A stretch of DNA of 64,000 bases from Bugula neritina. Taxonomy: Eukaryota > Animalia > Bryozoa. The notes below the pieces were generated by a model. That model saw nothing but the letters and a program-made list of their open reading frames with translations, was not told the DNA's origin and made no database searches. A program made the translations under genes and the position numbers. This document shows, in pieces, positions 8,379-56,599 of this stretch; the first letter of the stretch is position 1; each line of letters opens with the position of its first letter. The stretch spans positions 4,778,233 to 4,842,232 of the forward strand of contig OZ037772.1 in the NCBI GenBank assembly GCA_964035545.1, given 5' to 3'.

Positions 8379-8420
<42 letters not shown>

Positions 8421-12511: not shown

Positions 12512-15420
12512 TGATTGATTGATTGATTGATTTATTGCATATCACAAACATGACAACATGTTGCAAAATTCAGTGTAAATATTGACTATAACATAATTTG
12601 GCATGAACAAAATTAAGAGAAAAAGTCAAAACTCTGTTAGATTATTTAAAATAAAAGCTCATTTAAAGTATTTACAAGATGTCACAAGAAGCTATCTCTG
12701 CCCCATGCCTCTCTATATTTGTGGTTCGATATCTTCCAGATGGGCATTGACTCAGAAAGTCATTAATGAAATGGTCATTGTCTACTATATGTCTGATGGC
12801 AAGTTATTTAGTGAGTTTCTGAATGTGCAAATCAATGTTTAGATACTCATTCCCAAGTTTTGAGCAATTTTTGAAAAGCTTTCGGATAGCCTTTTTATCA
12901 CTGGCATAGATACAAGTAAAAATAATAGGTTGACAATAGGCGATGCGGGACATAATGAAAATTTTGAATAACATCTTTGCTAGAGGTTTACAGCTAAGAT
13001 ACACAAAATTCTTCACAATATACATTCTTCTTGATACTGTTGTAACTACTGATTGTACATTTTCATGAAATCTCAAATTCTGATCCACTAGCACACCAAG
13101 ATATCGCACTTTTTCAGACAGCACAATGTTGGTTCCATTCAATACGAGAGTTGGGGTATGAGGTTTAGCATTTCTTGAGTCTCGCTAGGGTTTAATAATT
13201 TGTTTAGATCATCACATTGCTTAGAAATTCTTTTAATCTCCTCAAAGTAAATATTTAGATCAGACTGCTTGCCAATGCAGCCAATAATGCAAGTGTCATC
13301 TATATATTTAATTACAGTTATGTTGCTCTAGCTTGATGTAATCCTATTGGTGTAGATAGAAAACAATAGTGGAGATAAACAGCACCCTTGGGGAGTTCCT
13401 GTGTTAGTTATGATTGGATTTGATGTTATGCCATCCACTATTGTGGGCTGTACTCTGTTTGTAAGAAAGCTGCAAATCCACTAAGTATTATTGGAGTCAA
13501 GATGAGTTAGTTGCGTAATGAGGTCTGGAATATATATAGTATTGAATGCAGAAGAGAAGTCTAGAAAGAGGCACCTTGGGTAATTGGATGCTTCCTTACC
13601 AATGAAACTTGTCACAGTTGTAGTTAGACATAACAGCGCATTTTGTGTAGAGCGATGTGTACAATATGCGAACTGATATTTATCCATAGGTGTATGAGTT
13701 ATAATGTAGCGTTTGATGAGCCTTTCCAGCATTTTGCATATACAGCTTGTGAGAGCAATTAGACGATATTGTTTAAGTAGTTCCGGATTTTCTACTTTAG
13801 GAAGTGGCTTGATCATGGCAGATTTCCATGAATTTGGAGTTGTCTTGGATTGGGCGGAGAAAGTAAACAGTTTCATAAAGGCAGGTGCTAGTTGATAGCA
13901 GCAGGTTTTCAAAACTTTCGAAATGAGACCATCAGGACCTGTACCCTTTTGAAAGTTTAGTCCCTTTAGCTGTTTGAGAACAGCATCTTCCGATATTTCC
14001 AATGGAAGTGCACTGATAATGTTTTCATCAAAAACAGGCTGATGAGATACAGGCTTTTCAAATCGGGTGAAGAGGGTATTTATGTCATCATGTGTAAAGG
14101 GGCTAGCTTTAGCAGTAGTTGTCTTGCTGTGTGGTAGACCACTTATTTTCTTTATATCAATCCATGCTTTGGCTGGTTGATTTATTAGTTGTAGTTGAAT
14201 TTTCTTAGAGTAGTTAGGTTTGCTGTTGGTTATAGATCTGGTAACATCATGTTTGAGCTTATTATATAGTTTACGGTTTCCTTCTTTGTGGGCTACTTGT
14301 TTTTGATAGATCATTTCTGTAATATGTTTAGTAATCCAAGGTTTCTGATTGGCACCTGTTCTGAAGCTTTTCATGAGTATGCACCTATCTGTGCAGAAGT
14401 TTATATAGTCTGTTACAATTTTAGATTGTTGATGGATGTTATCATCATCAGAGAGCAGATTATTCCAGATAGTAATGTCCAATGCTACTTTCAGCTTTTC
14501 ACAGTTCTCTTCAGAATATCTACGTCGGGTGACTTGAGTTGGTTTGTATTTAGATAATGGTGGGTAGGTTGGTATGAGATGTGTTATAAAGTGATCTGAC
14601 CCACCAAGCTTTGCAAGTTGATGGCAGTGTTTGAAGGCATCTTTGATTCTGATATAGCATTTATCAAGAATTTTATTGTTGCAGGTAGGTGTTTTGACTG
14701 TTTGATATTATCAATCAAGTTTAATCGGAACCTGATTTAAGTCCCCTATTACAAAAATGCAAGAATCAGGGTGCTTTTTCTTTGAGTCTTTAACATGTGT
14801 TGATATTGTTTTAGCTGTGGATGAAGCATTTTGTTTTAATCTAGAAGCATTGGTGAAGGGAGTATAGCATGAAACAGTGATAATTGAAGTAAACTCTCTT
14901 GGAAGTCAGTTAGGTCTTGATTTAATTGTCATAATTTCACAGTGAATGTCCATATATTTGAATATAAGGTTGTTATTTGTTGACCATTTGTTGTCAATAT
15001 AGACTAGAATTCCTCCTCCACAGGTTTTACCGCTAGCATCTGGAAGTCTGTCCATCTGGCACTGTTCATAACCTTCAAGCGCAGTTCTTGAATGTAGCAC
15101 ATCTGGAGTAAGCCAGGATTCCGTTATACAAATGAGCTGAGATTGGTTACTAAGTCTTTTAGTTTTAAGGAAACTGTGAAGTTTGTCGAGTTTATTTCTT
15201 ACAGATTGTGCATTAGTGAGAGCAACTGCAGGTAATGGTACTTTACCAGTTTTAGTACTGTGGTTGACTCTAACTCCGCCATGCTTGCCCCTCTTTCTAG
15301 ATCAAAGAAGTCTCGCATCAATAACCTTTACTGCGTGTTTGTAGTTAGTGTTCGAAATATCTTTTAGCTGATGTCGAGTCATAGAGCTTCTGATTGATCC
15401 AAAAATCTTTGCAATGTTGC
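12512..15420 (-). mobile_element. Rex1/Babar-clade LINE (APE endonuclease + reverse transcriptase), degenerate, abutting or inserted in the Gypsy LTR
   Basis: Endonuclease motifs RKRGKHGG...LPAVALTNAQSVRNK, ITESWL, GKTCGGGILVYI, SDH. RT motifs GPDG, YRLIALTS, QFAY, FLDFSSAFNTI, GTPQG. The 3' end is aataaa followed by a (tcaa)n tail at ~12537-12513. The 5' boundary is approximate. Confidence 0.9.
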
Positions 15421-17061: not shown

Positions 17062-17819
17062 CACAGGACAGTTAAGGGCAACCTTTTAGCTGCAACTGCC
17101 TTGCTGAGGTTTGCATTGTAATCATATAAGAATTCAGTACGAGTAAAATATAATCTCACCTAATTGTGCTAGAGTCATAATTTAAAAACTATATTGTAGA
17201 TCTTCTTTATCCTCAGTGCAACTTTTTTAGAAATTTCAATTTTCATTTTTTTTGCAAAGTTATGAACAAAAAACTGCCCAATTTTGGCCATTTTTGCCAG
17301 AAAAGCTGATTTTTCGTTCAGTACCAGTAAAATATCTCAGCAGCAAAACATGATATCTAAATAAAAGTTGCACTGCTGAAATCCTGAGATATTTCTCCAG
17401 TGCAATTTTTTTTTTTTTTAATAACTCTGCTAGATTGCTCATAAATTGGTGATTTATACACTGAAAATGCCATATTTTTTCATAAGAAACTAGCAGCGCG
17501 CAGTGCTTCACGCTTCAATGAGCAAGTAGGGATGAGAAGACATTGGTGCGTACATAATAATTACAGGCTCCCTAGCTGGCAGGCTATAATGAATAGCTCC
17601 CTTTGTATTTAGTTTATGTAGCACCCATCATCGAATGTTGATAGATAACGCAGCCCTAACGAAGGTTGCTCCTTATTGGTTGTAGTTTAATCTTAGGCTG
17701 AACAATTGCAAGTAGGCAACACGCATGCCACCCGCAGAGCAATATTATTAAAAAAACTGACCTACATTTTGAGAGAAATTTATGATATTCTTAGTGAGGA
17801 TGCCCTTAACTATCCTGTG
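17062..17819 (+). mobile_element. ~750-bp MITE, CACTA/EnSpm(CMC)-like, copy 1
   Basis: TIRs cacagga(c/t)agttaagggca ... tgcccttaactatcctgtg with a 2-bp TT target duplication; non-coding. Confidence 0.85.
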
Positions 17820-22134: not shown

Positions 22135-25100
22135 AGGATTATCATGGCGGAAAATGCTACCGGAGTACTCCCAGTAGCAGAAGAGCTGGCGCAGCCTCCA
22201 TGTCTTATAGAAAGTGATCCTATACGTAAAATAGATTGCGAGGACCCGTGCTACAAGGTAAAAAGGCGAACAGGCATTGCCTGAAAGCCTCTATCTTCAC
22301 TGGCCAGGAGGATTTTGAACAGTTCATCCAGGAATTTAACGAAATAGTAGCCATTACACAATGGCAACCCCGTGTGGTCCTGATACAGTTGTGGCTGGCG
22401 TTGACGGCGAAGGCCAGGCCTTTTGGGCTATAACCTTACGTCAATGGGATATCTGCTGCACTGTGTGCCACCTTCGGCTTTTCCACTGTAGACGCCAGGG
22501 CCTGTCTACAAGGTCGCGGTGTGACCGGTGCACATCTCTCCAGGAACATGCCGCTTCGGTTGAGAAGTTGGTAAGATCGCGTATGGCGACTTGCCACCTG
22601 TTAATCAAGAGTGTTACACTTTTGATACCTTTTGGCAATCACTTAACGACCTTTTTCTCTACCACCAGTTTCTGGCGAGAAGAGTCGTGACAGCTAAGAA
22701 TGCCTTTCGCGAAGGTGAGGCCTACCTATTGGCTACCCAGCTTTGTAGGTGTCGCATGAGTTCCCGACAGGTTAATGTAGACTAGGCAGAGGATCGCTAT
22801 GGTCATCGACCCACTCACATAGCGGCAACCACCGCAAGTTATCCATTAGACCCAGAGGTTAGCTGTATGACCAAAATGATGGGGAAGCTAGTGGCAGTCC
22901 TAGCTTAATCCGAGGCGTCGAGCTCCGCTCAAAAACTCCTGCAGTCGAGGGTTGGGCCGTGGCAACGACCCTCTGCCATGTGCTGGGAATGTGACGGTCA
23001 CAAAAATCTTCATTAGGAGTGCCTGAGGATGGGAAGGGAGCTAAACTCTCACAACCCATAGATGTTTCCGCCTACTGCGAGTCGAGCGTGAGGGACTTCC
23101 CATGGGAAAACCGTCAGCTGTTCGAATAGATGCGACGGACAATCCTGCAAGGATGGCAGGTGCCACACAAAACAGATCGACCGTATAGTAGATCGGATAT
23201 CTTCACCTTGCCACTCTACAATAGCTTCGGCGGGTTACCTGAACCAGAACCTGAAGAGAGACAAGACTTTGCATCTGAGGGAATGCTTTTCCCCTCTTGA
23301 AGACCTGCTCGTGACTGCCGAAAGTCACATCAGTCACAGCTCAAAGCGAGAGAGGTATCTCCTGCATAGAATGAGCGAGCTAAGGGAGTACAGGTTCAAA
23401 CCTATTGGGCAGCTACTTCTTACCAGGCAAAGTAGCCGGTCAGGTTGTCATCTTCCTGTTAGATTCAGGCTTTACCACAAACATTTTTAGTCGCCAGATC
23501 TTTGATACCCTCATCGCTAGAGATAAGGCTGGGTTGGAACCATACGACGGGGAACATGGCACGTTGGCGGACGCGTCATGTATTCCCTTCCACAGGATAG
23601 TTAAGGGCAAGCTTTTAGCTGCAACTGCCTTGCTGAGGTTTGCATTGTAATCATACTATATAAGAATTCAGTACCAGTAAAATAAAATCTCACCTAATTG
23701 TGCTAGAGTCAGATTTTATAAACTATGTTGTAGATCTTCTTTTTCCCCAGTGCAATTTTTTTGGAAATTTCAATTTTCATTTTTTTGCAAAGTTAGAGAC
23801 AAAAACACTGGCCAATTTTGCCAGAAAAGCTGACTTTTTAGTACCAGCAAAATATCTCAGCAGCAAAACATGATATCTGAATAAAAATTGCACTGCTGGA
23901 ATCCAAAGATATTTCTCCAGTGCAAATTTTGTTCTTTTTCCAATGACTTTGCTAGATTGCTCATAAATTGGTGATTTATACACTGAAAATGCTATTATTT
24001 TTAATAGGAAACTAGCAGCGCGCAGCACTTCACGCTTCAATGAGCACGTAGGGATGAGAAGATATTGGCGCGTGCATACTTATTGCAGGCTTGCTAGTTG
24101 GCAAGCTATAATAAATAGCTTGCTTTGTACTTTGTTTATGTAGCACCTATATTGGAATGTTGATAGATAACGCAGCCCTAATGAAAGTTGCTGCTTCATG
24201 GTTGTAGTTTGATCTTAGGCTAAACAAATGCAAGTAGGCAACACGCATGCCACTCGCAGAGCAATATTATTCAAGAACCTGAACTACATTTTGAGAGAAA
24301 TTTTTGATATTCTTAGTGAGGATGCCCTTAACTATCCTAGGTCTATGGTATAGTTTAGTTGACAGGACATGTGCAGGATCAGGCTAACCGGAAGACGTTC
24401 ATTGCCTGTCAACGCAAGGAGGATGCTCTTTTCGGAATGCTGTTCTTGAAGGAAATGGATGCCATATTGACCTTAGAAAGCCTGCGGTGGTTATGGCCGG
24501 GTATAAGCTCACCTTTTTCAACAAGTTTGGCAGTCCTTTCATAGGAGGCGTGTAGATAGTACGGAGCTGTATGATACCTAGCTGCTCTCGTCCAACTATC
24601 TATTTCAGGGTGAATAGTAGGCGGATCTTAGAACTAAAAGTAGTGGAAGGCGTGCATGATAGAATCTAACTTGCCAGCAGCTTAAATAAGTTGACTGCAT
24701 GAAAAGAGATTTTAGTGAAGTGTATCAACCCTTTCACGTAGTCTGTGGAGCTGTCGTCTGGGTTCATGGTGGGCCGGTTTCACTCTGTCTAAAAAAGAGA
24801 TGTGGGGCCGTCATTGGGCGAGATGACGGACAAGCTCTGTCGACCTCAGCAAGGAGGTCGGACACCGGTCCTGACACACATCAAGGACTTGTACAAAGTG
24901 GCCTGTCAGGGCTGCATTAGAAACGAGGAATGCCTGGCCATGGCAAAGCTGCTGCGGGAGTAAAAAGACGTGTTTCGTAATGGAGGCTTGTAGACCTGAC
25001 ACGGGCTGTCCGTCACAATATTCTTCTAGCTGCAGGGGCGGTCCCGATCCCACAATCTACACATAGGTTAAGACCGGAAAAGAAAAAGGTGAGCCGACAA

Positions 25101-28069: not shown

Positions 28070-28210
28070 CATGTCTGATCTGAAGAATCTGGAGACTCTT
28101 GATATGTCGGAGAATAACTTCAGTGAAGGATTACCTGATGTATTCACATCGATGACATCTCTAAGAGAAGTGAATATGGAGAACTGTGAGCTACCAACTC
28201 TACCTAAAAG
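28070..28210 (+). CDS. LRR exon 1 (141 nt, two LRRs)
   Basis: tatag|C ATG; MSDLKNLETLDMSENNFSEGLPDVFTSMTSLREVNMENCELPTLPK; weak donor gttttt. Confidence 0.75.
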
Positions 28211-31200
28211 GTTTTTAAAACCAACAATTATATGAAGTAGAAATAAACTGTTTTTATCTGGGATTTTGCATGGCTACATGTTTTTAGATTTATATTTTTT
28301 TAAGATAGATATTTTGTCAAAATTTCTCAAATCTGTTGCAAATTCTTGCAATATTATTACATAAATAAGCAAATAATTATACGCTAATGAAGAAATGTTA
28401 TGTATAAAATTATAACATGTGGTTAAATACAATATATTACATATGACAAACGGTACCATACTTTAGTTTCTAATGCTTGAAATGAGTAAATTAGGTAAAT
28501 AATAAGTTGACTTTATTCGCCTTTTCTTAAAAACGAAAAAGCGTAAGTTTCAAAATGTCATATCCTGCTGACTAAAGTAATTCTTTAATCTGGCAATATG
28601 ATGTATAATTGATATTTAAACAAGTCATACAGTAATAAAATTTGAAGTTTTAGAAACAATTATTTTGAAGTATTACATAAAAACGAATTATTTTCAAAAA
28701 TATAGTGGTAACAATAGAAAATATTGTTTTATATACTAATAAAATCTATATTTCATAACTGATATTCACCTTAAGATCTTGAAAAGAGAAACTCATGCAG
28801 TATATTTCACACACATATGTGATATTTATATGTAATAATGTATTTTATTCAAACTTCATTTTCCATTGGATGAAATTTTTATAATATCAATATACGACTT
28901 TATGCTAGAACTGCATTGCCTTTGCTTTAGATGGTCGTAATACTATAATTATAATGTTGCCTCAACTGGTATATGTTTACTATAGCATGTCTAATCTGAA
29001 GAATCTGGAGACTCTTAATATGTCAGGGAATAACTTCAATGAAGGATTACCTGATGTAGTCACATCGATGACATCTCTAAGAGATTGAATATTAGTTTCT
29101 GTGAACTACTAACTCTACCTGAAAGGTTAGTAAGAATGTATTAAATAAAATGTTCATTAGTGTGAAGGATATAATTCTGCATTAGATGTACCTATTTTTT
29201 TATTAAAGTTATCTACATATTCTGAAGTTGAGCTTGGAAAGTTCTAGAAGCATTTTGATTAGCTTTCTAGAGTTTCTAAGTGCAATATGTCGGGTTCACA
29301 GTAGAATCACAAGTACCAACTGTGTTAAACTTTTTCCACTGAGAGTTGACCACCGACTTTTCAGCTGACACCTTACCAACTACACTACAATAACTATTGG
29401 GTAATCTTAACATCTCATTCAACCAATTCTTCTGAACTCCACTGGCCCCTTTTCTACTCAATAACTATTAGGCTTCCCTGACTTCTCAACTCCCTTTGCA
29501 TCCAAACATACTACATGGCTGGCTATAGCAGTGTAAACAAACGCTGTACAGTTGTACAATATAACATCTCATATTCAATATAACATGCTTACTCGAACAT
29601 GTTTGATGTACATTTTTAGTAAACTCCCAGATGAATAATAATAATTTTTTATTCTCTTTACTTAATGAAAGTTTTCAGATTGTTATAACAATTCTTGATA
29701 CAGTTATAAAATCTGTGATCGTCCCCTCTTACCAGAATAATAGCTAATACAATCATTATAATAGCATATGTAACTTGAGATAGGAGTACGCTAATGTGTA
29801 TACAGGTCTAGTTCAACTCATCCTTCTGAGCCATCCCCCCCCCCTTATATATATGAGTAGAGTAGCTAGTCCTGAGTTCATTCAGGAAGCGCATTACATG
29901 ATATATAGATTTAGGCATAAAATAATTTGTAAACGAGCACGAAGAACAGTAAAAACATGCATGAGGGTCTGTCCAACATGTCCCCTGCCTACATACTTGT
30001 GACCCTCCAACGCATTACAGATAAACTTATTTTTAAACATAAATTTGAGTTATGAAGAGAGAAAAATCACCTTTTAGATGTTTTTTTATATAAATATAAT
30101 ATTACAAAACATGGAGCCTGCAATAATTATTGAAACTCCACTGTGTAATGATTCTTAAGAACGTAGAATAAAGTAATTTGAAATAATCGATAATGTGGCC
30201 CCTAGCCCAAGCTGAAGTTTAGAATATGTGGCTCCCACCATAAAATGCTCTGTTTCGAAAGCCCTCGCTACGAAAAGGTAGGAAACCCCCAGTCTAATAC
30301 ATGAGCTGCCTACTTGTATGACACAGCGGATGTGCACAGCCATAATCTACTACAATATTACTAAAGGAGTAAAAACTTATTTATGATTTGACTTTTTTAG
30401 CTGTTTCTTGAAAAATAAGAAGCTCAAGCTTCAATATGTCATATCCTGCAGACTAAAATCAGACTCTGATCCGGCAATATAAATTATAATGTATGATTCA
30501 TATTTAAATAAGTCATACAGTATTTTGTTATACTATAAGCTGTGATAAACTTTACAGATTTAGAAACAACTAATCTGCATTTTGAATTATAAAACAAAAA
30601 TGGATTATTTTCAAAAACTACCGGTAATGATAGAAAATATTGTCGTATATACTAATAAAATATAAAATTTATAACTTGTATTCAGCTTAATGTCTTGAAA
30701 TGAAGAACTCTGCAGTATATTTCACACACATATGTGATATTTATATCTAATAATGTCTTTTATTCCAACTTCATTTTTCATTAAATAAAATTTATATATC
30801 AATAAAAAACTTTACGCTATAATTACATTGCTGTAGCTTAAGATGGTTGTATTACTATGTGATGTCTCAACTGGTATATGTTTACTATAGCATGTCTAAT
30901 CTGAAGAATCTGGAGGTTCTTGATATGCCAGGGAATAACTTCAGTGAAGGATTACCTGATGTATTCATATCAATGACATCTCTAAGAGAGTTGCATATGC
31001 AGAACTGTGAACTACCAACTCCACCTGGGAGGTTAGTAAGAATGCATTAAATAAAGTGTTCATTTGTGTGAAGGGTATAGTTCTGCAATAGAAGTACCTA
31101 TTTTTTTATTAAAATTAGCTACATGTTTTAAAGTTCTACAGTTTTACAAACTTTCTGTATTTCATAAGTGAAATATATTAGGTTCACAATAGAATCAAAA

Positions 31201-34200
31201 GTACCAACTGTGTTACATACTTCCCATTGCAAGTCAACCACCGATTGCTAGCTGACGCTCTATAACCATTACATTACAAGGACTACTGGGTTATCCTGGC
31301 ACTCCATGCAACCAGTTCTTCTAAACTCTACTAGTCCCCTTACTACTTATTTAGTTTAGGCTTCCCGGGCCTTTCAACTCTCTTGCCATTCTACTAAAAT
31401 GCTATACTAAATGTGAAAAAGCTCCCTAACCATTACACATGGGTCGTTAGGTAATCTCAACACCACACTAAGCTGTTCACATGTGCATTCAGCTCCCTGC
31501 TACCATAAAGCTGTTCACGTGCACTAACCGTCATAATGTAAGAACTTCAATTACAGGAGGTTCTAATTTTACATGCCCCTCCTTTCAAATGGAAGGATAT
31601 CACAATTACTAGACATCAAATTTTTATAAGCGCATTACAGAGATTACTTGGTTAGCATGTGAATAAAATCTTAGTTGTATATATTATATGCTTCACTTGG
31701 TCTAATACATGAGCTGCCTACTTGTATGACACAGCAGATGTGCACAGCCAAAATCTACTACAAGATTACTAAATGATGTTTCAATTACTATATTATGTTT
31801 ACTATAGCATGTCTAATTTGGAGAATCTGGAGACTCTTGATATGTCACAGAATAACTTCAGTGAAGGACTACCTGATGTATTCACATCAATGACATCTCT
31901 AAAGACATTGTATATGAAGAACTGTGAACTAGAAATGCTACCTGAGAGGTTAGTGAAAGCAACTCAATATGAAATGCAAATAAACTATTTTATCTGTAGT
32001 ACACGACATCCAGGATTTGCCCGCATTTCTTTATATTTAAATTTTTTGCTGCTGAATAATTTCTGAAAATTCTTCAAACCTGTGAAATTATCTTTGCTAT
32101 ATTGTGTATAATATGCAAATAAATGCACGCCAATAAAAAGAATATATGTAGTATTATGACATATGATTCTGGAAAATATAAAAAATGTTACAATACTTTA
32201 ATTTCCTATATTCCTTAACGCTTGAATTAAGTAAAAGTTGATGAGTTAAGTTCAGTATATAGTTTTTTCTTGAAAAGATATACAGCTTTAGCTCTATTAT
32301 ATAATATACCTGCAGACTAAAACTAGCCATTGATCTGACAACATAATGGTAATTGATATCCAAATTATACAACTTTTTATTAAACACAATGAAAATTGTT
32401 AATTTGACAATCTTTAAATTTTAAAGTATAACAAAAACAAATTATTTTAGCAAATCACCTGTAATTATCGAAAAGAAATGATTTTAAATGTGAATAAAAT
32501 TTTAGTTGTACATCTGATGCTTTACTCAGTTTTAAAAAAAGCTCATGCTACAGTACATGTTTCACATGCATATGTAATATCTACTGTATATCTACTAATG
32601 TATTTTATTCTAACTTCATTTTCAATCAAATAAAATATGTATGTCAATCGGCAATTTTATGCTTGAATTACATTGCTTTAGCTTAAGATGGTTTTATTAC
32701 TATATGATGCTTCAACTGGTATATGTTTACTATAGCATGGCTAATCTGAAGAATCTAGAGACTCTTTATATGCCATATAATAACTTCAGTGAAGGATTAC
32801 CTGATGTAGTCACATCAATGACATCTCTAAGAGAAATGAATATTAGTTTCTGTCAACTACTAACTCTACCTGAAAGGTTAGTGAAAATGAATCAAATAAA
32901 ATATTTATTAGTGTGAAGGATATATAGTTCTGCAATAGAAGTACTTATTTTTTATTAAAATTTTCTACAGGTTTTAAAGTTCTACAGTTTTACAAACTTT
33001 CTGAATTTCTTAAGTGCAATATATTAGGTTCACAGTAGAATCACAAGTACCAACTGTGTTACATACTTCCCATTGGAAGTCAACTACCGGCTTGCCAGCT
33101 GATGCACTAACCATTATACTACAAGGGTAACCCTAACACTCCATGCAACCAGTTATTCTAAACTCTGCTGGTCCCCTTACTACTCATTCAGTTTAAGCTT
33201 CCCGGGCCTCTCAATTCTCTTGGCGTACTACTAAAATGCTATACTAAATGTGAAAGAGCTTGCTAACAATTACACATGGGTCGTTAGGTAATCTCAACAC
33301 CACACTAAGCTGTTCACATGTGCATTCAGCTCCCTGCTACCGTAAAGCTATTCACCTGCACTAACCATCATGATGTAAGAACTTCAATTACAGGAGGTTC
33401 TAATTTTACATGCCTCTCCTTTCAAATGGAAGGATATCACAATTACTAGACATCAAATTTTTATAAGCGCATTACAGAGATTACTTGATTAGCATGTGAA
33501 TAAAATCTTAGTTGTATATATTATATGCTTCACTTGGTCTAATACATGAGTTGCCTACTTGTATGACACAGCAGATGTGCACAGCCAAAATCTACTACAA
33601 CATTACTAAATGATGTTTCAATTACTATATTATGTTTACTATAGCATGTCTAATCTGGAGAATCTGGAGACTCTTGATATGTCACAGAATAACTTCAGTG
33701 AAGGATTACCTGATGTATTCACATCAATGACATCTCTAAGAGTGTTGTATATGGAGAACTGAAAACTAAAAACTCTACCTGAGAGGTTAGTGAAAGCAAC
33801 TCAATATGAAATACAAATAATATGATTTTATCTGTAGTACACGATACCCATTTCTTTATACTTAAATTTTTTGCTGTCAGGTAATTTCTGAAAATTTTTC
33901 AAACCAGTGAAATTATTCTTGCCATATTGTATATAATATGCAAATAAATACAAGCCAATAAAAAGATTCTATGTAGTATTATGACATATGGTTCTAGAAT
34001 ATATAAAAATGTCACAATATTTTAATCTCCTATATTCTTTAACGCTTGAATTAAGTGAAAGGTAATGAGTTATGTTCAGTATATAATTTTTTTTCAGAAG
34101 ATATACAGCTTAAGCTCTATTATATAATATACCTGCAGACTAAAACTAGCCATTGATCTGACAACATAACGTATAATCAATATTTAAATTATACAGTCTT

Positions 34201-37200
34201 TCATTAGATACAATAAAATTGTTAATTTGACAATCTTTAAATTTTAAAGTATAACGAAAACAATTTACTTTAGGAAATCACCTGTAACTATCGAAAAGAA
34301 ATTATTTTATATGTGAATAAAATTTCCGTTGTACATTTTACGCTTTACTCAGTTTTGAAAAAAATATCATGCCGCAGCACATGTTTCACATGCATATGTA
34401 ATATCTACTGTTTATCTACTAATGTATTTTATTCCGACTTCATTTTCCATCGAATATAATCTGTATGTCAATATCGGCAATTTTATGCTAGAATTACATT
34501 GCGTTAGCTCAAGATGGTTGTATTACTATATGATGCTTCAATTGCATGGTATTTTTTTACTATAGCATGTCTAATCTGAAGAATTTGGAGACTCTTCATA
34601 TGCCAGGGAATAACTTCAGTGAAGGATTACCTGATGTACTCACATCAATGACATCTCTAAGGACGATGTATATGCAGAGCTGTGAACTACCAACTCTACC
34701 TGAGAGGTTAGTGAGAATGCATCAAATAAAATGTTCATTAGTGTGAAGGTTATAATTCTGCCATAGAAGTACTTATTTTTTTTATTAAAATTATCTACAG
34801 TTTTTAAAGTTCTACAGTTTTACAAACTTTCTGCATTTCATAAGTGAAATATATTAGGTTCACAATAGAATCACAAGTATCAACTGTGTTACATACTTCC
34901 CATTGAAAGTCAACCACCGGCTTATGCCAGCTGACGCACTAACCATTACACTACAAGGATAACCCTAACACTCCATGCAACCAGTTATTCTAACTTCTGC
35001 TGGTCCCCTTACTACTCATTCAGTTTAGGTTTCCCGGGCCTCTCAACTCTCTTGGCGTACTACCAAAATGCTATACTAAATGTGAAAGAGCTTGCTAACA
35101 AATACACATGGGTCACTAGGTAATCTCAACAACCCACTAAGCTGTTCACATGTGCATTCAGCTCCGTGCTACCATAAAGCTATTCACGTGCACTAACCAT
35201 CATGATGTAATAACTTCAATTACAGGAGGTTCTAATTTTACATGCCCCCTCCTTTCAAATGGAAGGATATCACAATTACTAGACATCAAATTTTTATAAG
35301 CGCATTACAGAGATTACTTGATTAGCATGTGAATAAAATCTTAGTTGTATATATTATATGCTTCACTTGGTCTAATACATGAGCTGCACACTTGTATGAC
35401 ACAGCAGATGTGCACAGCCAAAATCTACTACAACATTACTAAATCATGTTTCAATTACTATAATTATTATGTTTACTATAGCATGTCTACTCTGGAAAAT
35501 CTGGAGACTCTTGATTTGTCACAGAATAACTTCAGTGAAGGATTACCTGATGTATTCACATCAATGACATCTCTAAGAGAGTTGCATATGAAGAATTGTA
35601 AACTAGAAATGCTACCTGAGAGGTTAGTGAAAGCAACTCAATATGAAATACAAATAAACTATTTTATCTGTAGTACACGACATCCAAGATTTGCCCGCAT
35701 TTTTCTATACTTAATTTTCTTGCTGCCAAATAATTTCTGAAAATCTTTCAAACCTGTAAAATTATTCTTGCTATATTGTAAATGGTATGCAAGTAAGTAG
35801 AAGCCAATACAAGGATTCTATGTAGTATTATGACATATGGTTCTAGAACATATAAAAATGTCACAATACTTTAATTTCCTATATTCCTCAACGCTTGAAT
35901 TAAGTAAAAGTTAATGAGTTAAGTTCAGTATATAATTTTTTTTAGAAGATATACAGCTTAAGCTCTATTATATAATTTACCTGCAGACTAAAGCTAGCCA
36001 TTGATCTGACAACATAACCTATAATTGATATCTAAATTATACAGCCTTCTATTATATACAATAAAAATTGTTAATTTGACAATCTTTAAATTTCAAAGTA
36101 TTACAAAAAGAAATTATTTTAGCAAATCACCGGTAATTATTGGAAAGAATTTCTTTTATATGTGGATAAAACTTTAGTTGTACATCTGATGCTTTACTTT
36201 GTTTTGAAAAAAGCTCATGCTGCAGTACATGTTTCACATGCATATGTAATATCTACTGTATATCTGCTAATGTATTTTATTCTAACTTCATTTTCAATCA
36301 AATAAAATCTGTATGTCAGTCGGCAATTTTATGCTAGAATTACATTGCTTTAGCTTAATATGCTTGTATTACGATATGATGTTTCAACTGGTATATGTTT
36401 ATTATAGCATGTCTAATCTGAAGAATTTGGAGACTCTTCATATGTCAGGGAATAAGTTCAGTGAAGGATTACCTGAGGTATTGACATCAATGACATCTCT
36501 AAGGACGTTGTATATGAAGAACTGTGAACTACCAACTCTACCTGAGAGGTTAGTGAGAATGCATTAAATAAAATGTTCATTAGCGTGAAGGATATAGTTT
36601 TGCAATAAAAGTATTTATTTTTTATTAGAATTATCTACATATTCACGTGCACTAACCGTCATGATGTAAGAACTTCAAATACAGCCCCTCCTTTCAAATG
36701 GAAGGACATCACAATTACTAGACATCAAATTTCTATAAGCGCATTACAGAGATTACTTGATTAGCATGTGAATAAAATCTTAGTTGTAGAATTACATTGC
36801 TTTAGCTTAATATGCTTGTATTACGATATGATGTTTCAATTACTATATATTGTTTACTATAGCATGTCAAATCTGGAGAATCTGGAGACTCTTCATATGT
36901 CAGGGAATAACTTCAGTGAAGGATTACCTGAGGTATTCACATCAATGAAATCTCTAAGAGAGTTGGATATGAAGAATTGTAAACTAGAAATGTTACCTGA
37001 GAGGTTAGTGAAAGCAAGTCAATGAGAAATACAAATAAAATGTTTTATCTGTAGTACACGACACCCAGGATTTGCCCGCATTTCTTTATACTCAATTTTT
37101 TTGCTGCCAAATAATTTCTGAAAATTTTTCAAACCTGTAAAATTATTCTTGCTATATTGTATATAATATGCAAATAAATACAAGCCAATAAAAATAATAT

Positions 37201-40200
37201 ATGTAGTATTATGACATATGGTTCTAGAATATATAAAAAATGTTACAATACTTTAATTTCCTATAACGCTTGAATTAAGTAAAAGTTGATGAGTTAGGTT
37301 TAGTATATAGTTTTTTTCTTGAAAAGATATACAGTTTAAGTTCTATTATATAATATACCTGCAGACTAAACCTAGCCATTGATCTGACAACATAACTTAT
37401 AATTGATTTTTAAATTATACAGTCTTTTATTAGATACAATAAAAATTGTTAATTTGACAATCTTTAAATTTGAAAGTATAACAAAAACAAATTATTTTAG
37501 CAAATCACCTGTGATTATCGAAAAGATATTATTTTATATGTGAATAAAATTTTAGTTGTACATCTGATGCTTTACTCTGTTTCGAAAAAAAAGGTCATGC
37601 TGCAGTACATGTTTCACATGCATATGTAACATCTACTGTTTATCTACTAATGTATTTTATTCCAACTTCATTTTCCATTGAATAAAATATGTATGTCAAT
37701 CGGCAATTTTATCTTAGAATTACATTGCTTTAGCTTAAAATGGTTGTATTACTATATGATGCTTCAACTGGTATATGTTTACTATAGCATGTCTGATCTG
37801 AAGAATCTGGAGACTCTTAAAATGTCAGAGAATAACTTCAGTGAAGGATTACCTGATGTATTCACATCAATGGCATCTCTAAGGAGGTTGTATATGCAGA
37901 TCTGTAAATTACCAACTCTACCTGAGGGGTTAGTGAGAATGCATTAGATAAAATGTTCATTAGTGTGAAGGATATAGTTCTTCAACAGAAGTCCTTTTTT
38001 TTATCAAAATTATCTGCAGTTTTTAAAGTTCTACAGTTTTTAAAGTTCTACAGTTTTACAAACCTTCTGCATTTCTTAAGTGCAATATATTAGGTTCACG
38101 GTAGAATCACAAGTACCAACTGTGTTACATACTTCCCATTGAAAGTCAACCACCGGCTTGCCAGCTGACGTTCTAGCCATTACACTACAAGTGTAATCCT
38201 AACACTCCATGCAACCAGTTATTCTAAACCCTGCTGGTTCCCTTACTACTCATTCAGTTTAGGCTTCCCGGGCCTCTCAACTCTCTTGGCGTACTACCAA
38301 AATGCTATACTAAATGTGAAAGAGCTTGCTAACAATTACACATGTGTCACTAGGTAATCTCAGCACTACACCAAGCTGTTCACATGTGCATTCATTTCCC
38401 TGCTATCATAGGATAGTTAAGGGCATCCTCACTAAGAATATCATAAATTTCTCTCAAAATGTAGTTTGGGTTCTTGAATAATATTGCTCTGCGGGTGGCA
38501 TGCGTGTTGCCTACTTGCAATTGTTTAGCCTAAGATCAAACTACAACCAGTAAGCAGCAACCTTCATTAGGACTGCGTCATTTATCAACATTACATTATG
38601 GGTGCTACATAAACAAAGTACAAAGCAAGCTATTCATTATAGCCTGCCAGCTAGCAAGCCTGTAATTAGCATGTATGCGCCAATATCTTCCCATCTCTAC
38701 GTGCTCATTGAAGCGTGAAGTGCTGCGCGCTGCTAGTTTCTTATGAGAAATATGGCATTTTCAGTGTATAAATCACCCATTTATGAGCAATCTAGCAGAG
38801 TTATTGAAAAAAAAATTGCACTGGAGAGATATCTCCGGATTCCAGCAGCGCAATTTTTATTCAGATATCATGTTTTGCTGCTGAGATATTTTACTGGTAC
38901 TGAAAAGTCAGCTTTTCTGGCAAAATTGGCCAAAATTGGGCAGTTTTTTGTCTATAACTTTGCAAAAAAAATGAAAATTGAAATTTTCCAAAAGGTTACA
39001 CTGGGGAAAAAGAAGATCTACAACATGGTTTTTAATTTTTGACTCTAGCATAATTAGGTGAGATTTTATTTTATTGGTACTGAATTCCTATATGATTACA
39101 ATGCATACCTCAGCAAGGCAGTTGCAGCTAAAAAGTTGCCCTTAACTATCCTGTGCAAGAATACATGGATGCTTCGAAAATTTAACCAATGGAACTTACT
39201 GGATTACATAATTATCAGGCAAAGGAATTTGAGTGAGGTTTTAGATACTTGAGCTGTAAGAAGAGCAGATTGTGGCACATATTATGTGATGCTAAAGTAA
39301 AAAATAAGGATTTAAAGAAAACACATTGCAAGAAAGACACAATTAAACTAAGCACTGTCATGCTGAAAGATCCAGAAAAAACAGAACAACTTAAAAAGAA
39401 ATTGAATAAGAATATAAAGTGTTGAGATGAAAATAATAATGAGATAGAGCAAATGTGGAAAATTTTGAGAACAGTGTTTTCAACTGATAGTGAAGTGGTT
39501 GAGAAGCAAGGCCGTAATAATCAGGATAGCTTAATGAGCATGATAAACTGCTACAACAGTTGATTGAGAAGAGAAACAAGGCAAGACAAGCTTTCTTCCA
39601 GTGTAATACCAGAGTGAAGAAAAGAGCTGCTTAAAAGCACAGAGCAGTCTTCAGAGGTATACCAGAGAAATGAAAAGTAACTGGTGGGAAGAAGAAGCAA
39701 TAGAACTCCAAATGACAGCAGACAGGAGGGACATGAAAGCATTATATTTAGGCTCAAAAGAAGCTTATGATCTGAAATCAAGAGTAATGATTCATCTCCG
39801 AGACCATAATGGACAAACAGTTTTACAAGAGAAGGGAAAAATATTAGAAAAATATCTGATCACTTCAATCAATTGCTTAACATACCAGGCGAGCTGGATA
39901 AAGCAGCAAAAAACATAGTGCAAAAGTCGCCTGTTGCATTTTTGGATGGTTCTCCCAATATGGATGAGCTCGTGTCAGCAAATAGCTCAACACAGGATGG
40001 AAAAGCTGTTGGCAGAAATGGTATTCTATCTTTGGTATGAAAGCATGGTGGTCAAAAAATGACAGGTGGTCTTTACAATACAGATTTTGTTGGACACCGA
40101 GACAGTACCACCAGACTGGACGGAAGCAAGCATTGTCCAATTTTTAAGAAAGGCGAAAGGAAAGTAAACAGGAATTATTGGGCATAATCTTGTATCTATT

Positions 40201-43200
40201 GTAGACAAGATTTCCTCTTGCATACTATCGGCTAAATGCATATACTACCCAAGAGGTGCTACTGGAGTCTCAGTGTGAATTCAGGAGTGGAAAGAAGCGC
40301 AAGTGTAAGAGAGGTGCAGAAAACATAATATGCTACTGTCCACAGCATTTTTTGACCCTAGTAAAGCATTTGATATTGTATATATTGCAAGCCTTTGGCA
40401 GGTTCTTAAAAGGTTTGACTGTACAGACAAGTTTATTTACATCAAGGAAGCTCTTCATACAGGCATGCAAGCAAATGTGGCAGTGGGCAGTTCCATCTCA
40501 AATAATTTTGCAGTAACAAATGGAGTCAAACAAAGGTGTTTCCTTGCACTAACACTTTTCTCACTCTACCGGTCAGCAATGCTTGAGGTTGCGTTCAAAG
40601 ACAGCTCCGAAGGAGTATCATAAAAACTAGAAAAGAGGCAGATCTTGTTGACGTTGCTCATGTCAAGTCAAAATTTAAAACCACTACTGAGTGAGTAAAA
40701 GATTTGCTATTTGCTAGTGATAGTACTTTAGTTGCTCTTCATTCTTATGCTATACAGACTCCAGTCAACAGATTTGCCAATGCTGCAAAATATTATAATC
40801 TCAAAATTATCATCAAGAAGACAGAATGCCTCTACCAGCTTGCAAATTTTGAAAATGCAGGTGTACCGTGCTACGTTACTCGCTGCCTTACTGTATGGTG
40901 TTGAGACTTAGAACATACACAGTGTGCTAGTAGACAGACTGCAAGCGTATGTCATGCAATATCTATGCTCAATCATGGGTGTCTTTTAGAAGGACAAGAT
41001 TACTAACCAAGAAGTATTAAAGAGAGCTAGCTTAGCATCTCTAAAATCTATCCTTATTCAAATGAACTTGAGATAGCTAGGACATCTCGAGACGACAGAT
41101 CATGGCCATTTATGTTAACAAATTCTCTATTCGCAGCTGAAAAAAAGTACACAAAGCCAAGGAAGGCCAAGATTTAGATTTAAAGACACTGTAAAGCGAA
41201 ATATAAAAAAGTTGGACATGTACAGAGATAGCTGGCAAAGGAAGGGTTAATGTAGATATGGATGGAGACGTTTGATCAAACTAAATTGAAAAGAGTCATT
41301 GTCGCACCGACAGACTGCTCTGATGACGACAGTGATGGTGATGATGATAATGATGATGATAATGAAGATGATGATAATGATGATATTGATTCTCATTATT
41401 ACTTTTGTTGTTATTTTAAGATCATAAAAAAATAGATATTTAATTTGTTTTAAAAAACAGTTAGGTTTGATGTATCATATTATATTTCATGATATTTTGC
41501 TGTATTTAGTTTGCTTCCAAGCGATGCTGAAAAATTTCTACAGTAAAACAGTTGCATAGAGTTGAGGTTTTTTAAATGACGTGTTTAAGAAAAATTCCCC
41601 GTGATGAGTTTGCAGACATCTTTGCAAATGCGTTATCGTCTGAAATAGGTGAAATATATTTTTTTAAAGATCTTCAAAAGCTATATTCAGAAGCGACTTG
41701 TTTGTTAGAATCTGACTTATTATATATCATATTTTATCTGAATTACAGTTTGCAGTATTTGGAGAATCTGGAAGTTCTGAACATTGGGCACAACAACATG
41801 ACTATAATTCCAGAGGCTGTCTGCAACTTGAAAAAATTATACAGACTAGAAGTTTCTGGATGCAAAGCTCTAACCACTCCCCCTTATGAAGTCTGTACAC
41901 AAGGATTATCAGCTATCAGACAATACTACAAAGATCTGGCAAAAGGTAAAGGTGAAAGTCTTCCCCTAGTCACCATTGCCGTGATTGGTCACACAATGGC
42001 AGGGAAAACGAGTCTCATCAGAACATTGCAGAGTGAAGAGCGAAAGCGAGTGCTGACAAATCGTGGACCTGAGTTTGAAGTTGACGAAACAACTAAAGTC
42101 TTTAAAGTTGAAGAGTTAAAAGTAAATAACACAGTTCTGAGACTAATAGACCTGGGAGGACAGCCAGTGTATCACATGACATACCAGCTAACACTTAAAC
42201 AAAACTGCATGCCGATAGTAGTGGTGAACATGGAGCACTATGATCTGCTGGCAAAGGAGAAAGGAGACAGAGAGGCTGTGAGAAGACTGGCTTTTGATTG
42301 GCTGGCTCATTTATATGTGGCAAATCCTGGAATTAGACAACCGAAACTGGTTTTTACTCACAAAGACAAGTTTGAAGAGGAGAATTTCACAAAGCTGACT
42401 TCTAATTTCACCAACACAGCTGATCTACTAAAAGATGAAATCATCAGAGAAGAGAAACAACTAGACCAAAGCATAGCAGAGATAGAACATTTCCATCAAC
42501 ACAAAGAGCTGTTCCTGCGTAAGGATATCTACTCAGTTGGGAAAGAAGATACTTATCAAATTTTTGAGAATATGAAATCTGCCATCTTTAATTCAGCTCA
42601 AAAATTTGTAAAAGTGTTGCCAAAACTATGGGAAGATGTGAATGAGAAGATTTTAGGATTGCAGACAGCATTCAGTACATTTGATGAAATACTTCATGCA
42701 GTGCAGCAAGTAGGTAGAGGTATCACACCTGATCAACTCACCACGATCCTCACCTACATGCATGATTGTGGTAAGATCTTGTGGTACAAAGATATCAAGG
42801 AGTTGAACTTGATTATTTTTCACAAAATTGCGAAAGTTACTGAGCTACTCAAAGTCTTGTTTCAGCATGATGAAAATGTGTGGCAGATTCGGCAAACAAG
42901 TTTCAAACCACAGCTTCTGACTAACGGAGCTTTTCTTGAGGAAGAACAGTTTGAGAAATTTGTAGGAGATTTCTTGTCAGCAGGAATCATGGAGAGCCAA
43001 CTTCTAGAACATTTAATCAAAGCTGAGACAGCATTCTTTGATGAAAATGCATACCTACTTGCTGTCACTTTGCTGCAGAAATTCAGCATTCTCTACGGAC
43101 CAGCTGATCTGGAATCAAGGAGCTGCTTCATTGTTCCCTTCTACTCTCCTGATTACTTAGAGAACAATCTTACTACTGATGAAGACATCATTCTCCATGC

Positions 43201-46200
43201 TGAGATCATGTTCAAAGGTTTCTCAATTCCACAATATGTCTACCAGCAGATGAGTGTTGTTGTCCTACAAATGTTCCCGGATGAAACAAGTGTTTCCCTT
43301 GTTAGAAAAAACGGAGTAAAGGTTTTCCACGATGACATCTCAGTGCGCCTTGTCCATGATGGTCTCTCAAGAAAGGCAGATGTAACAGTGTCTGGAGCAA
43401 CAGAGAAAATCACAGATTGTTGGAAACACATGGTCAGCATAACCAGGCAAATATCCAAGGAGATTCGGCGTTCATGGCCTGCCAGCAGAATGGTACACAA
43501 GTCTAGTTGTACACACTGCATTCTGAAAGATGACTCCAGTCCTGAGTTTCAGGTTACTCCCAGCTGGTGTCTTGACTTTCAAACTGAGAAGCCATATCAA
43601 CAGTTTCAGAGGAAGACGGTGACAGTTTTCTGTAGAGGGGAGAAGATTTTGAGCCCACTTGTTCACCCCTGTAAGTCAGTAATAAGTAGTTTTGTAATGT
43701 TTCAATTGCAATACTAGTTACCTGTTACCAACACTGAGAACATGTCTGCTGTTGCTATTTCAGGCACCCCTTTGACAAGCCAAGATACTCAACGACTTAA
43801 AAACACCATTGCAGAACTGAGAGAAAAAAAACAAGGGAAAAGCTTCAAAACTGGCAAGTCACCATTGTTATTTAACATCTAGTAAATTCTTTCCTCATTT
43901 AGTATGTTGATGTATAACAAATATATATATGTCAAGTTTGTTGTTGTTGCAATACCAAAAACATTTTAAAACAAAAAAAACTAGGGCAAGGTGACCGATG
44001 CAAAAGTTATTGCAGGAAAAAATACTAGAAATCTAAGTGTCTGCATTTATACATTTTTATTCTATCAGCATATTATTTTAATAAAACAATATGATTATAT
44101 TCACAATATAGAAACTGTCAAATCACATCAGCAAACCACAACCACCTCTGTGGAAGATGAGCTGAGTGATCTCTCTGATGATGATGAATATATTCTACCT
44201 CCACCATCTGCTGTTGACAAAATAAAACATCTTAAGCAAGTCCCTGTCTTTACAACTAAACAAAGTATAAAAGAGCTCTTTTCAAACACTGAGAAGGTAA
44301 TGTAACAGCTTTACGTACAACTCTATGGAAAGCCTTCAGCATTGCTCAAAAATACATGTATAGTAGTAATTTAAAAATATTTGTACTATTTTTATTTCAC
44401 AATTATAAAAAAAAGTGTGTTATTAGTATTAACTTCCTAGCGTGCCTGTGTTATGCTCTAAGGGTATGTATGAACCTTATGTATTCCAATTAGGTGTTTG
44501 GTATGACAATGCCAAGAGGAACCGCTTTGATAATCAACAATGAAAAGATAACCAATAGCTCAGACAGACCAGGTTCTCAAGTTGATGTTCAAAATCTGAG
44601 TGACATGCTACGATCCTTTCAGTTCAATATTGAGATGAAAACAGATCTCACAGCTGAGGTGGCAGTTATGACCAATTTTGTTGTTTCTTTTAATTAATTT
44701 TAAGCTATATAATCACAAGTGTTGTTATAAAGCAAATTTGACTCAGATATAATATAAGAGCTGAGTTTAAATCTTTTGATTTCTAATAATTTATAAGTTA
44801 AAAGTTACAATTGTGCTTCTCATTTGCTTTTATATACTGTTAACCGTCTGAATTGTTTTACAAAAGCTCACAACTTTTACACAAATATACTCATTATTTC
44901 CAATTTTTTTAAACAAACAGGAATTATACCAAACGGTTAAAGCAGAAATTAACAACAGCAGAAATGCTGACCACGGAATGTTCTTTCTGTTCATTGGTTC
45001 TCATGGAGTTGAGAATCATGTGTATGGATCAGATGGAGAGTTGGTAAAACTGACAGACCTGTATGACCTGCTATCTGTTCCTCAGAATCCAGTGGTTGCT
45101 GATAAGCCTAAACTGGTTGTCATCCAAGCTTGCAGCATTGGTGAGTATTCTATAACCTGCATCTTACTATAAGCCAATGTATTACAGCATCAAAAGTACC
45201 TCTACCAATCAAATACAATATATGAATCATTTAGATCTACCTAAATCTAAAAAAACAGAACACCCTGGTGCTGAGACTGCTACACCTTCAGTTTCTGTTG
45301 CTAGTACCAGAGACAGAAGTCTGCTGGAGAGACGTCATGGTGAAAATTTATATGTTATGAAAGCTAGCTTTCCGTGTGAGTAAAAAATTCTCTTTTTTGG
45401 ATTAGTGTGTTCTCTGTAGATATTTGCTTTTACATCTAAACATAAAATTGTTCTGTATGTGCTAACTTTTTCACAAATAACCAAAATATTGCATTCCAGT
45501 TTATGTCAGTTAGTAGAGCAATATCCACGTTATTGACTATAGCTCTTCAAGTACTAAAAGTTCAGCTTTGTTGTATGTTATATAGCTTATAGTGCCTGGA
45601 GATTTTCTGACTGTGGATCTCTATTCATCAGATGCTTTGTCAGAACCATGTACCGACATGCCTGTCATAGAGACATGCATGAGATCTACAAAATTGTGAG
45701 TGTGCTACATTCCATCTGATATAATATAGTAACATATAGCTTCTTTCAAAACTTGTTAATGTATTCTGTGTCTCATCTCTTTTGTTTTCATAACGTGAAA
45801 GACCATAGTAATTAAGTGAAAATAACTCAGAACAAAATAGAAACACTTATTATGTTGACTTTCTCATGCTGAATTTATTTCTAAATTATGTTTCAACTTA
45901 CATTTAAGTCTAAGCAATTTTTTTGTGGTGACATGTTGCATTATTTTTATGTAGGTACAAAATCGGGTTAGAAAATTTTGTACGGAGAAAAGACTTCCTC
46001 TTGGACAACTACCAGTTGCTATAGACACTCTGACACACCATAGAAAACTCTACCTGTTTCCAGGATATGATGGAAGTTCTGGTCGAGAGAAGGAGCTGAG
46101 TTTACTTCAACTCAGGAAGAGATGCCAACATCCTCCATCCAAGCCGCTTCTGTCCAGTCTAGCTGCACAGTCCACACTGTCAGAGTCAGCTAGCACTTCA

Positions 46201-55636: not shown

Positions 55637-56599
55637 TTAGTTGATTCCTATAGGTCGAATAACTCTGTGAGAACGTGTACCTATTCTTAAAATGTTTCTC
55701 ACATGATCAATGTATTTTGGATGAAAATAAATAAACATGAAAACATTCACAATCCCATACAATGAAAACAGACTTGCACTGACTGTCTCTAATACAACAG
55801 CTAATTTTGCAAGAAAACTAAAACTCTGACAAATGAGAAATACGACACCGAGCGAAAAATGAAGTTGATAAAGCAGATAACTCCATATAATATATTTACT
55901 GGCTGATATCACCAACTCATCTCCTGGTAAATTTCTTTGAGCCATTAGCTTCAGTTTTTTCCATACTTTGACAAGGAAAAAAGATGTAATGAATGACAGA
56001 GCTAGGAGCTCGAGTGCATACAAGATATACACTACACTGTATCCCCTCTCTCTTGACACAACTTGTATTGCTATCGCAGTCCAACAGAATTCTACTGTTG
56101 GTATCATATTAAGTGCAAAACAGTTTAACACTCCTAGAAGATAAATTGTTCCAGTCATAGACTTTATATTGTTAATGAAAAGGTGTGTGCCATATCTGTA
56201 TGGGTGACACACTCCAATATATTTCTCAACGCTTGAAACTAGAAACACAAGAACTCTTGAAAAGGTTCCACATGCGATTATAGAAATTAGAAGTTTTGAA
56301 ACCCAATAAGCTGCTTGTACACCGAGCTGTAAAACAATTTCTTTAAGTTTACAACTGAAGAACACAGCATCCGAAATGCTGTATGTTATGTCAGATAAAC
56401 CGATGTTTACCAAAACCCAGAAAAATTTGGTTCTCTTAAGTTCTTTCATTCGGTTGAGTATAATGAGATGCAAGACATTGACAATAATAGAGAGGCAGTT
56501 TATTCCATCATTAATCTGTACAAATGAGTGGTAACACTTCTCTGTCTCATTGTGACATGGTAAAATCTCGTCATATGATGAGGTGTTGTTTCCTTCCAT
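55637..56599 (-). CDS. Rhodopsin-like (class A) orphan 7TM GPCR, 320 aa, single coding exon
   Basis: Seven hydrophobic segments, N-glycosylation sequons in the N-terminus (NNTS, NET), TM1 Asn, TM2 LSD, ECL1 Cys, TM3 SVEKYIGVCHP. A splice acceptor (ttgctatag) lies 3 nt upstream of the ATG. Confidence 0.88.
   Translation of the reverse strand: MEGNNTSSYDEILPCHNETEKCYHSFVQINDGINCLSIIVNVLHLIILNRMKELKRTKFFWVLVNIGLSDITYSISDAVFFSCKLKEIVLQLGVQAAYWVSKLLISIIACGTFSRVLVFLVSSVEKYIGVCHPYRYGTHLFINNIKSMTGTIYLLGVLNCFALNMIPTVEFCWTAIAIQVVSRERGYSVVYILYALELLALSFITSFFLVKVWKKLKLMAQRNLPGDELVISASKYIIWSYLLYQLHFSLGVVFLICQSFSFLAKLAVVLETVSASLFSLYGIVNVFMFIYFHPKYIDHVRNILRIGTRSHRVIRPIGIN

Follow-up and report, generated by a model that had tools for sequence, protein, structure and literature searches.

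Tandem leucine-rich repeat (LRR) exons of a bryozoan gene probably diversify under positive selection, which would drive the differences between cassettes at residues on and beside their predicted beta-strands. The gene lies in a 64,000-nucleotide stretch of Bugula neritina DNA (contig OZ037772.1, positions 4,778,233 to 4,842,232 of the forward strand), which we call the window and number from its first letter. Its array of LRR cassette exons stands upstream of an exon encoding LRRs, a Roc GTPase and a putative COR domain, and of exons encoding a caspase. We regard diversifying selection on the strand-face residues of these paralogous cassettes, some neighbouring residues included, as the best explanation of their differences and as a probable one. 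A preliminary description of the window had proposed such selection at concave LRR positions, and the proposal is supported both by a ratio of non-synonymous to synonymous rates (omega) above 1 and by an excess of change over the intron rate.

Cassette exons and the placement of their variation

The array consists of 11 tandem LRR cassette exons between 28070 and 37928, each of 141 nt except exon 2, which has 140 nt. A 30-nt repeat core matches 11 times between 28.1 and 37.9 kb against a chance expectation of 0, and the limits first given for the array fall exactly on the start of exon 1 and the end of exon 11. Cassettes begin after the acceptor ctatag/C and end at the donor AG/gttagt (slash, exon boundary). 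A Ser codon, AG/C, is split across the junctions, its third base opening the exon and its first two closing it, so all 11 cassettes are phase 2-2. Each cassette encodes 24 + 23 residues, or two LRRs. Single exons score above the Pfam cut-offs for LRR_1 (29.7 and 31.7 bits; cut-off 20.6) and LRR_8 (28.6 and 29.3 bits; cut-off 27), and their motif register agrees in alignment with solved LRR ectodomains and SHOC2.

Variation between cassettes is concentrated in two short patches. Among ten full-length copies, nucleotide diversity reaches 0.259 in codons 11-14 and 0.288 in codons 32-38; it is 0.025 in codons 15-24 (NNFSEGLPDV, 3 of 30 sites variable) and 0.044 in codons 26-31 (TSMTSL), which confirms the near-invariance of NFSEGLP(D/E)V and TSMTSL noted at the nucleotide level. 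The flanking introns of older cassette pairs are 25-57% different. The two core segments are therefore conserved at silent sites too, which points to homogenisation of the exon core.

The entropy of 64 intact copies from the six closest genes resolves these patches by position. Peaks fall on codons 11 and 14 (x5, x8) in repeat 1, on codons 33, 35, 37, 38 and 40 (x3, x5, x7, x8, x10) in repeat 2, and on codon 42, which follows the Cys. In repeat 1, x2 and x3 (E, T) are nearly fixed. The preliminary description listed the variable residues exactly: all 11 four-residue strings are correct, and so are the ten seven-residue strings, which cover every exon except exon 2. Its placement of the variation at LRR x positions holds for the patches and fails in two respects, as repeat 1 x2 and x3 hardly vary and as x10 and codon 42, outside the strand, do vary. 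In a single-cassette structural model, for which 63 cassettes were aligned, residues 9-14 and 33-37 form strands; confidence is moderate (mean predicted local distance difference test score, pLDDT, 69). The patches form 45 and 54 distinct haplotypes among the 64 exons, most of them unique. Given these numbers and the lack of any four-combination quartet, we rejected a small shuffled pool of patch haplotypes.

Selection at concave positions

Codon models place concave positions above neutrality and scaffold positions below it. We set the concave class beforehand as x2, x3, x5, x7 and x8 of xxLxLxx in each repeat, so its sites were not picked by their variability. A fixed-site MG94-F3x4 model, run in custom code, recovered omega values of 0.4, 1 and 2 from simulated data and gave no false positive in 30 simulations at omega 1. 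Across 63 unique intact exons of the six closest genes, omega is 2.05 at concave codons (p=2e-4, profile interval about 1.4-3.2), 0.41 at scaffold codons (L1, L4, L6, N/C9, L11; p=0.0015) and 1.12 at the remaining codons. The 11 window exons by themselves, with breaks masked, give a concave omega of 2.22 (p=0.058, 95% interval about 1-6). The first description expected dN/dS to exceed 1 at concave sites, a level reached once paralogous copies add power.

The estimate recurs in subsets of the family. Arrays of genes with an intact Roc-COR exon give a concave omega of 1.90 (p=0.002), and the chromosome-1 arrays give 3.71 (p=4e-4). With separate trees for the two halves of the exon, half 1 yields 2.31 (p=0.019) and half 2 yields 1.56 (p=0.089), for a combined p of 0.015. 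A distant subfamily with 144-nt cassettes replicates the result (concave omega about 12, p=2e-4). Site-wise tests return positive selection at codons 8, 14, 16, 19, 25, 35, 38 and 42 and purifying selection at scaffold codons 7, 15, 31 and 41. Codons 16, 19, 25 and 42 are non-concave, showing that selection reaches beyond the concave face. Nei-Gojobori estimates over all pairs are lower, at 0.92 for concave codons in the window and 1.36 overall; we trust them less because they ignore transition bias and the saturation of multi-hit codons.

Comparison with introns gives the same answer independently of any tree. We took 16 independent nearest-neighbour cassette pairs, chosen on 250 nt of flanking sequence and 7.1% apart in their introns. 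Their concave codons hold 80.7 non-synonymous differences, where the intron rate and spectrum predict 26.0, and 13.3 synonymous differences, where they predict 9.0, for an omega of 2.1 (binomial p=0.004). Counted by codon, 59 concave codons change their amino acid where 24.7 were expected (95% range 16-34), and 6 change silently only where 7.4 were expected. Non-synonymous change thus runs at 3.1 times the intron rate in concave codons, 0.45 times in scaffold codons and 1.04 times in the remaining codons, with synonymous sites at about 1; this is the contrast with intron divergence that a claim of concave diversification calls for. The early remark that most substitutions are non-synonymous is right by count; over the whole exon, however, such a count is the neutral expectation (38.7 non-synonymous against 13.3 synonymous differences in three window-only pairs, omega 1.05). 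Only the concave class shows a non-synonymous excess over that expectation.

Further comparisons bear on the choice of pairs and on the integrity of the exons. When pairs were picked on one flank, the other flank differed by 0.14-0.19, still less than concave codon positions 1+2 (0.24-0.27). Ten pairs predict about 11 exon indels from intron rates, and the intact set has 0. Of 69 cassette copies, 64 are intact with splice sites kept. All these comparisons are between paralogous cassettes rather than alleles, and searches and folding proceeded exon by exon, with the breaks in the two disabled exons masked.

Several observations weigh against positive selection as we read it. As intron divergence rises from 0.03 to 0.36, exon divergence stays flat. 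Between exon halves and flanks, distances are weakly correlated (rho 0.06-0.26), and an exon's nearest relative by one flank is not its nearest by the other. With segments so loosely correlated there is no single correct tree and tree-based p-values are approximate; we therefore give more weight to the pair counts, which are tree-free and undistorted by recombination. The pairwise homoplasy index (PHI) test (incompatibility 0.583 between neighbouring sites, 0.527 between distant ones, P=0.994) is uninformative on recombination because it is swamped by clustered hypervariable sites. Part of the concave excess may itself come in by exchange. The chromosome-8 arrays together give a concave omega of 1.34 that is not significant (p=0.19), and the window, at p=0.058, depends on its paralogues for significance. 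Multi-base changes account for 21 of the 59 changed concave codons and can inflate omega, and synonymous change in concave codons is itself somewhat raised, at 1.5 times. Finally, 2 of the 11 window cassettes are disabled, so this copy may be losing function, and the Roc-COR exon contains stops in two of the six closest genes.

These points leave three other accounts to be weighed. Conversion among 70 or more similar exons under relaxed constraint could import differences faster than point mutation alters introns, with no selection for diversity. Such exchange would explain why exon divergence does not follow intron divergence, why relatives differ between flanks and segments correlate weakly, and why the core is far more alike than old introns, a sign of homogenisation; the chromosome-8 omega is compatible with 1, as it would require. 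Neutral import nevertheless predicts an omega of about 1 and not 2. The family-wide interval excludes 1, as do the pair test and the distant subfamily. Most patch haplotypes are unique and form no recurrent four-combination pairs, so few differences can be traced to a donor. We hold relaxed constraint with exchange to be unlikely.

The window copy might instead be a young pseudogene in neutral decay over an older conserved pattern, an account that draws on the frameshift in exon 2, the stop in exon 6, a retroelement fragment in the intron before the Roc exon and the stops in two sister genes. Yet decay can neither raise omega above 1 nor target strand positions, and it sits poorly with a scaffold omega below 1, intact exons free of indels, nine of 11 cassettes and all splice sites intact, and an unbroken Roc-COR frame and caspase catalytic motifs; we judge it quite improbable. 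Ordinary individuality of repeats would mean old, stable differences, with purifying selection preserving the contact residues particular to each repeat; in its favour, x positions vary more than scaffold in any LRR protein. Comparisons of close relatives contradict it. Set against their nearest partners in other genes, with introns 7% apart, the window exons change at concave codons 4.7 times faster than introns (omega 2.68, p=0.004), and near-identical units whose upstream introns show 0 differences in 246 nt are already five amino acids apart with 0 silent changes. Old and stable differences are thus highly improbable as the explanation.

Our preferred explanation takes in the gene as a whole. 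The 11 exons would be interchangeable two-LRR cassettes of one gene, multiplying as units of 0.9-1.8 kb are unequally exchanged. The scaffold residues are retained, as are the splice sites and the segments that form loop and helix, and selection would act at x5 and x8 of repeat 1 and at x3, x5, x7, x8 and x10 of repeat 2, giving nearly every cassette a surface of its own. The product would be an LRR solenoid of about 24 repeats joined to a Roc-COR GTPase and a caspase. Its cassette surface would recognise a ligand and so gate the GTPase and caspase, like a single-chain NLR (nucleotide-binding, LRR-containing receptor) or inflammasome. The architecture makes such predicted gating by ligand sensing likely, and analogy suggests a pathogen or allorecognition receptor. 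We infer that the disabled exons 2 and 6 are skipped. A bolder extension, which we consider rather improbable, is that phase-symmetric cassettes are used combinatorially, disabled ones being skipped, so that each of 70 or more genes yields many isoforms of a recognition system (self/non-self or pathogen) in a colonial animal with the caspase as built-in executioner. If true, this would be a splicing-based germline repertoire, unlike those of NLRs, variable lymphocyte receptors (VLRs) or Dscam.

Architecture of the gene and its surroundings

Downstream of the array, the exons encode a putative GTPase switch and a caspase. The acceptor of the large Roc-COR exon shares its phase with the cassette donors, and the exon lies in an intact open frame of 713 codons. 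Its Roc match is marginal (PF08477, 27.6 bits; cut-off 27), and the open reading frame (ORF) contains the P-loop GHTMAGKTS. The COR-A profile scores 20.2 bits on this ORF, under its cut-off of 35.3; the Bugula relative likewise stays below the cut-offs, with COR-A at 30.5 bits (cut-off 35.3) and COR-B at 22.1 bits (cut-off 27). Two exon ORFs match the caspase profile PF00656 (E 4.7e-10 and 8.3e-9), and the catalytic motifs, SHG and QACSIG, are intact. The single named relative, a Bugula neritina protein, carries Roc, COR and caspase and shares 37% identity over 652 residues. Among database proteins the best match reaches 86% identity, over the Roc-COR ORF alone. The 216-Mb genome contains the Roc-COR exon in at least 74 copies; six of them are 79-100% identical to the window's exon, and two of these six contain stops.

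Exons assigned to the LRR-Roc-COR-caspase gene (window coordinates; slash, exon boundary)
Feature	Coordinates	Strand	Remarks
LRR cassette exon 1	28070..28210	+	DMSE / REVNMEN; LRR_1 29.7 bits, LRR_8 28.6 bits; donor AAG/gttttt weaker than in other exons
LRR cassette exon 2, disabled	28986..29125	+	1-nt deletion in codon 33, 140 nt, frameshift; splice sites intact
LRR cassette exon 3	30891..31031	+	DMPG / RELHMQN
LRR cassette exon 4	31808..31948	+	DMSQ / KTLYMKN
LRR cassette exon 5	32736..32876	+	YMPY / REMNISF
LRR cassette exon 6, disabled	33645..33785	+	In-frame TGA in place of Cys codon 39; splice sites intact
LRR cassette exon 7	34566..34706	+	HMPG / RTMYMQS
LRR cassette exon 8	35482..35622	+	DLSQ / RELHMKN
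LRR cassette exon 9	36408..36548	+	HMSG / RTLYMKN; intron to exon 10 shortened, start-to-start spacing 455
LRR cassette exon 10	36863..37003	+	HMSG / RELDMKN
LRR cassette exon 11	37788..37928	+	KMSE / RRLYMQI
Large exon: last two LRRs, Roc GTPase, putative COR	41749..43670	+	P-loop GHTMAGKTS; acceptor ttacag/T; 3' end approximate (T/gtaagt)
Caspase (Peptidase_C14) exons	44494..45172	+	Within ORFs 44494-44697 and 44978-45172; the second with SHG and QACSIG

Two intron types take turns from one cassette unit to the next, repeating about every 1.84 kb, and some introns are rearranged. The intron between exons 9 and 10 (36549-36862) is a fusion of both types. The 1.9-kb gap between exons 2 and 3 (29126-30890) contains a piece of B-type intron joined to a second copy of exon 1's upstream sequence. 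We considered and rejected a missing exon in this gap, which holds rearranged intron pieces only. Upstream of 28070, where the gene's 5' end was sought, neither a first exon nor another LRR exon was found. The sister gene on locus L007 contains two more broken cassettes, one truncated at 666 and one frameshifted at 8238; broken cassettes within otherwise open genes seem to be tolerated. The distant subfamily, found at L017:2684-9021 (G000:C5) and on L016, has 144-nt two-LRR cassettes, some of them 271-276 nt apart. Its whole-exon omega is 5.7, a signal far stronger than that in the window.

Mobile-element remains and other genes share the window, in which G+C is about 30%, genes are spliced and TA microsatellites occur. 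Two direct repeats, each about 750 nt long (17062-17815 and 23591-24337) and an 88% match to one segment of locus L001, enclose a G+C-rich stretch; integrase-like ORFs lie close by, at 26.8-27.5 kb. This element upstream of exon 1 is probably a long terminal repeat (LTR) retrotransposon, and the array of the next gene is likewise preceded by a related element. A reverse-transcriptase-like ORF fragment occupies 13481-14482 on the minus strand (RVT_1 E 2.5e-9). Another such fragment at 40330-40623 on the plus strand, judged by ORF translation alone, lies in the 3.8-kb intron that separates exon 11 from the Roc-COR exon. On the minus strand, 55637-56599 is an intronless ORF of 320 codons with a weak match to rhodopsin-type G-protein-coupled receptors (7tm_1 E 0.0047, below cut-off). 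A two-copy 264-nt tandem repeat at 7257-7785 has a unit that looks tRNA-derived, though a tRNA scan with ARAGORN finds none. An (CACACACG)n array of about 15 copies lies at 8375-8492.

Elsewhere in the assembly, COX1 occurs on several contigs. A full-length copy in a chromosome-scale contig (G000:C6:11174072-11175412) has the same nine TGA codons as the mitochondrial contig (C321:12636-13976) and represents either mitochondrial DNA inserted into the nuclear genome or a join made in assembly. A further contig (C17:12213-13505) carries COX1 without internal TGA that is possibly bacterial.

Relation to known LRR systems

The pattern of variable surface on a conserved frame is familiar from plant resistance genes. 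In the LRRs of Cf-4/Cf-9 and NLR proteins, Ka/Ks exceeds 1 at the hypervariable, solvent-exposed x residues of xxLxLxx, and the genes form clusters of paralogues that exchange sequence and turn over by birth and death. The xxLxLxx signature is common to both systems. Plant receptors, however, have NB-ARC or no switch where the window gene has Roc-COR, and they lack both a cassette exon for each repeat pair and the fused caspase effector found here.

Lamprey VLRs also use LRR cassettes to diversify a concave binding surface. There, non-spliced donor cassettes are copied somatically into an incomplete gene, whereas the cassettes of the window family are in-line exons with canonical splice sites. 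An AG acceptor is present in 68 of 69 cassette copies and a GT donor in almost all, and the copies stand in line with the gene. Nothing suggests somatic assembly, and we rejected a VLR-type mechanism.

Among animal proteins, MFHAS1/MASL1 and LRRK2 share the order of LRRs followed by Roc-COR, which the window gene shows with its Pfam Roc match and P-loop. They differ in being single-copy conserved genes, with a kinase or no effector and without cassette arrays, and we found no report of diversifying selection on them in the literature examined. Our literature search likewise found no paper on an animal LRR-Roc-COR-caspase architecture or on this animal family.

Bacterial conflict systems built on the AP-GTPase (Roc-COR) offer an architectural parallel. 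They combine N-terminal fast-evolving LRRs, a Roc-type GTPase, COR and a C-terminal effector of varying kind, caspases included (Kaur et al. 2021, PMC8195603). The parallel does not imply homology of the whole architecture, and the bacterial systems differ in being prokaryotic single ORFs without exon cassettes.

Closest in organisation are the LRR-ROCO genes of brown algae. Ectocarpus and kelps have expanded LRR-Roc-COR families whose tandem phase-2 cassette exons are duplicated and shuffled; alternative splicing has been shown in them, and an immune receptor role has been proposed (PMC11378527). Site models there find positive selection at a few concave LRR positions, 14, 16, 18 and 19 (Zambounis et al. 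2012 as cited in PMC11378527; Teng et al. 2024). As in the window, phase 2-2 LRR exons lie upstream of a Roc-COR exon whose acceptor has the same phase, and tests find positive selection at LRR surface sites; algal sites 14, 16 and 19 coincide with positive sites here if the algal numbering starts at the first Leu. The systems differ in cassette size, 72 nt and one LRR in algae compared with 141 nt and two LRRs here (144 nt in the distant subfamily), and in the animal host and the caspase after COR. The bryozoan family thus provides a second, independent case of phase-2 LRR cassette exons serving a ROCO sensor. What is new is a quantitative test of selection on the cassettes of an animal Roc-COR family fused to a caspase. 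A hypervariable, positively selected LRR surface is the mark of a receptor engaged in an arms race or in self-recognition, and these genes are candidate innate immune or allorecognition receptors for bryozoans.

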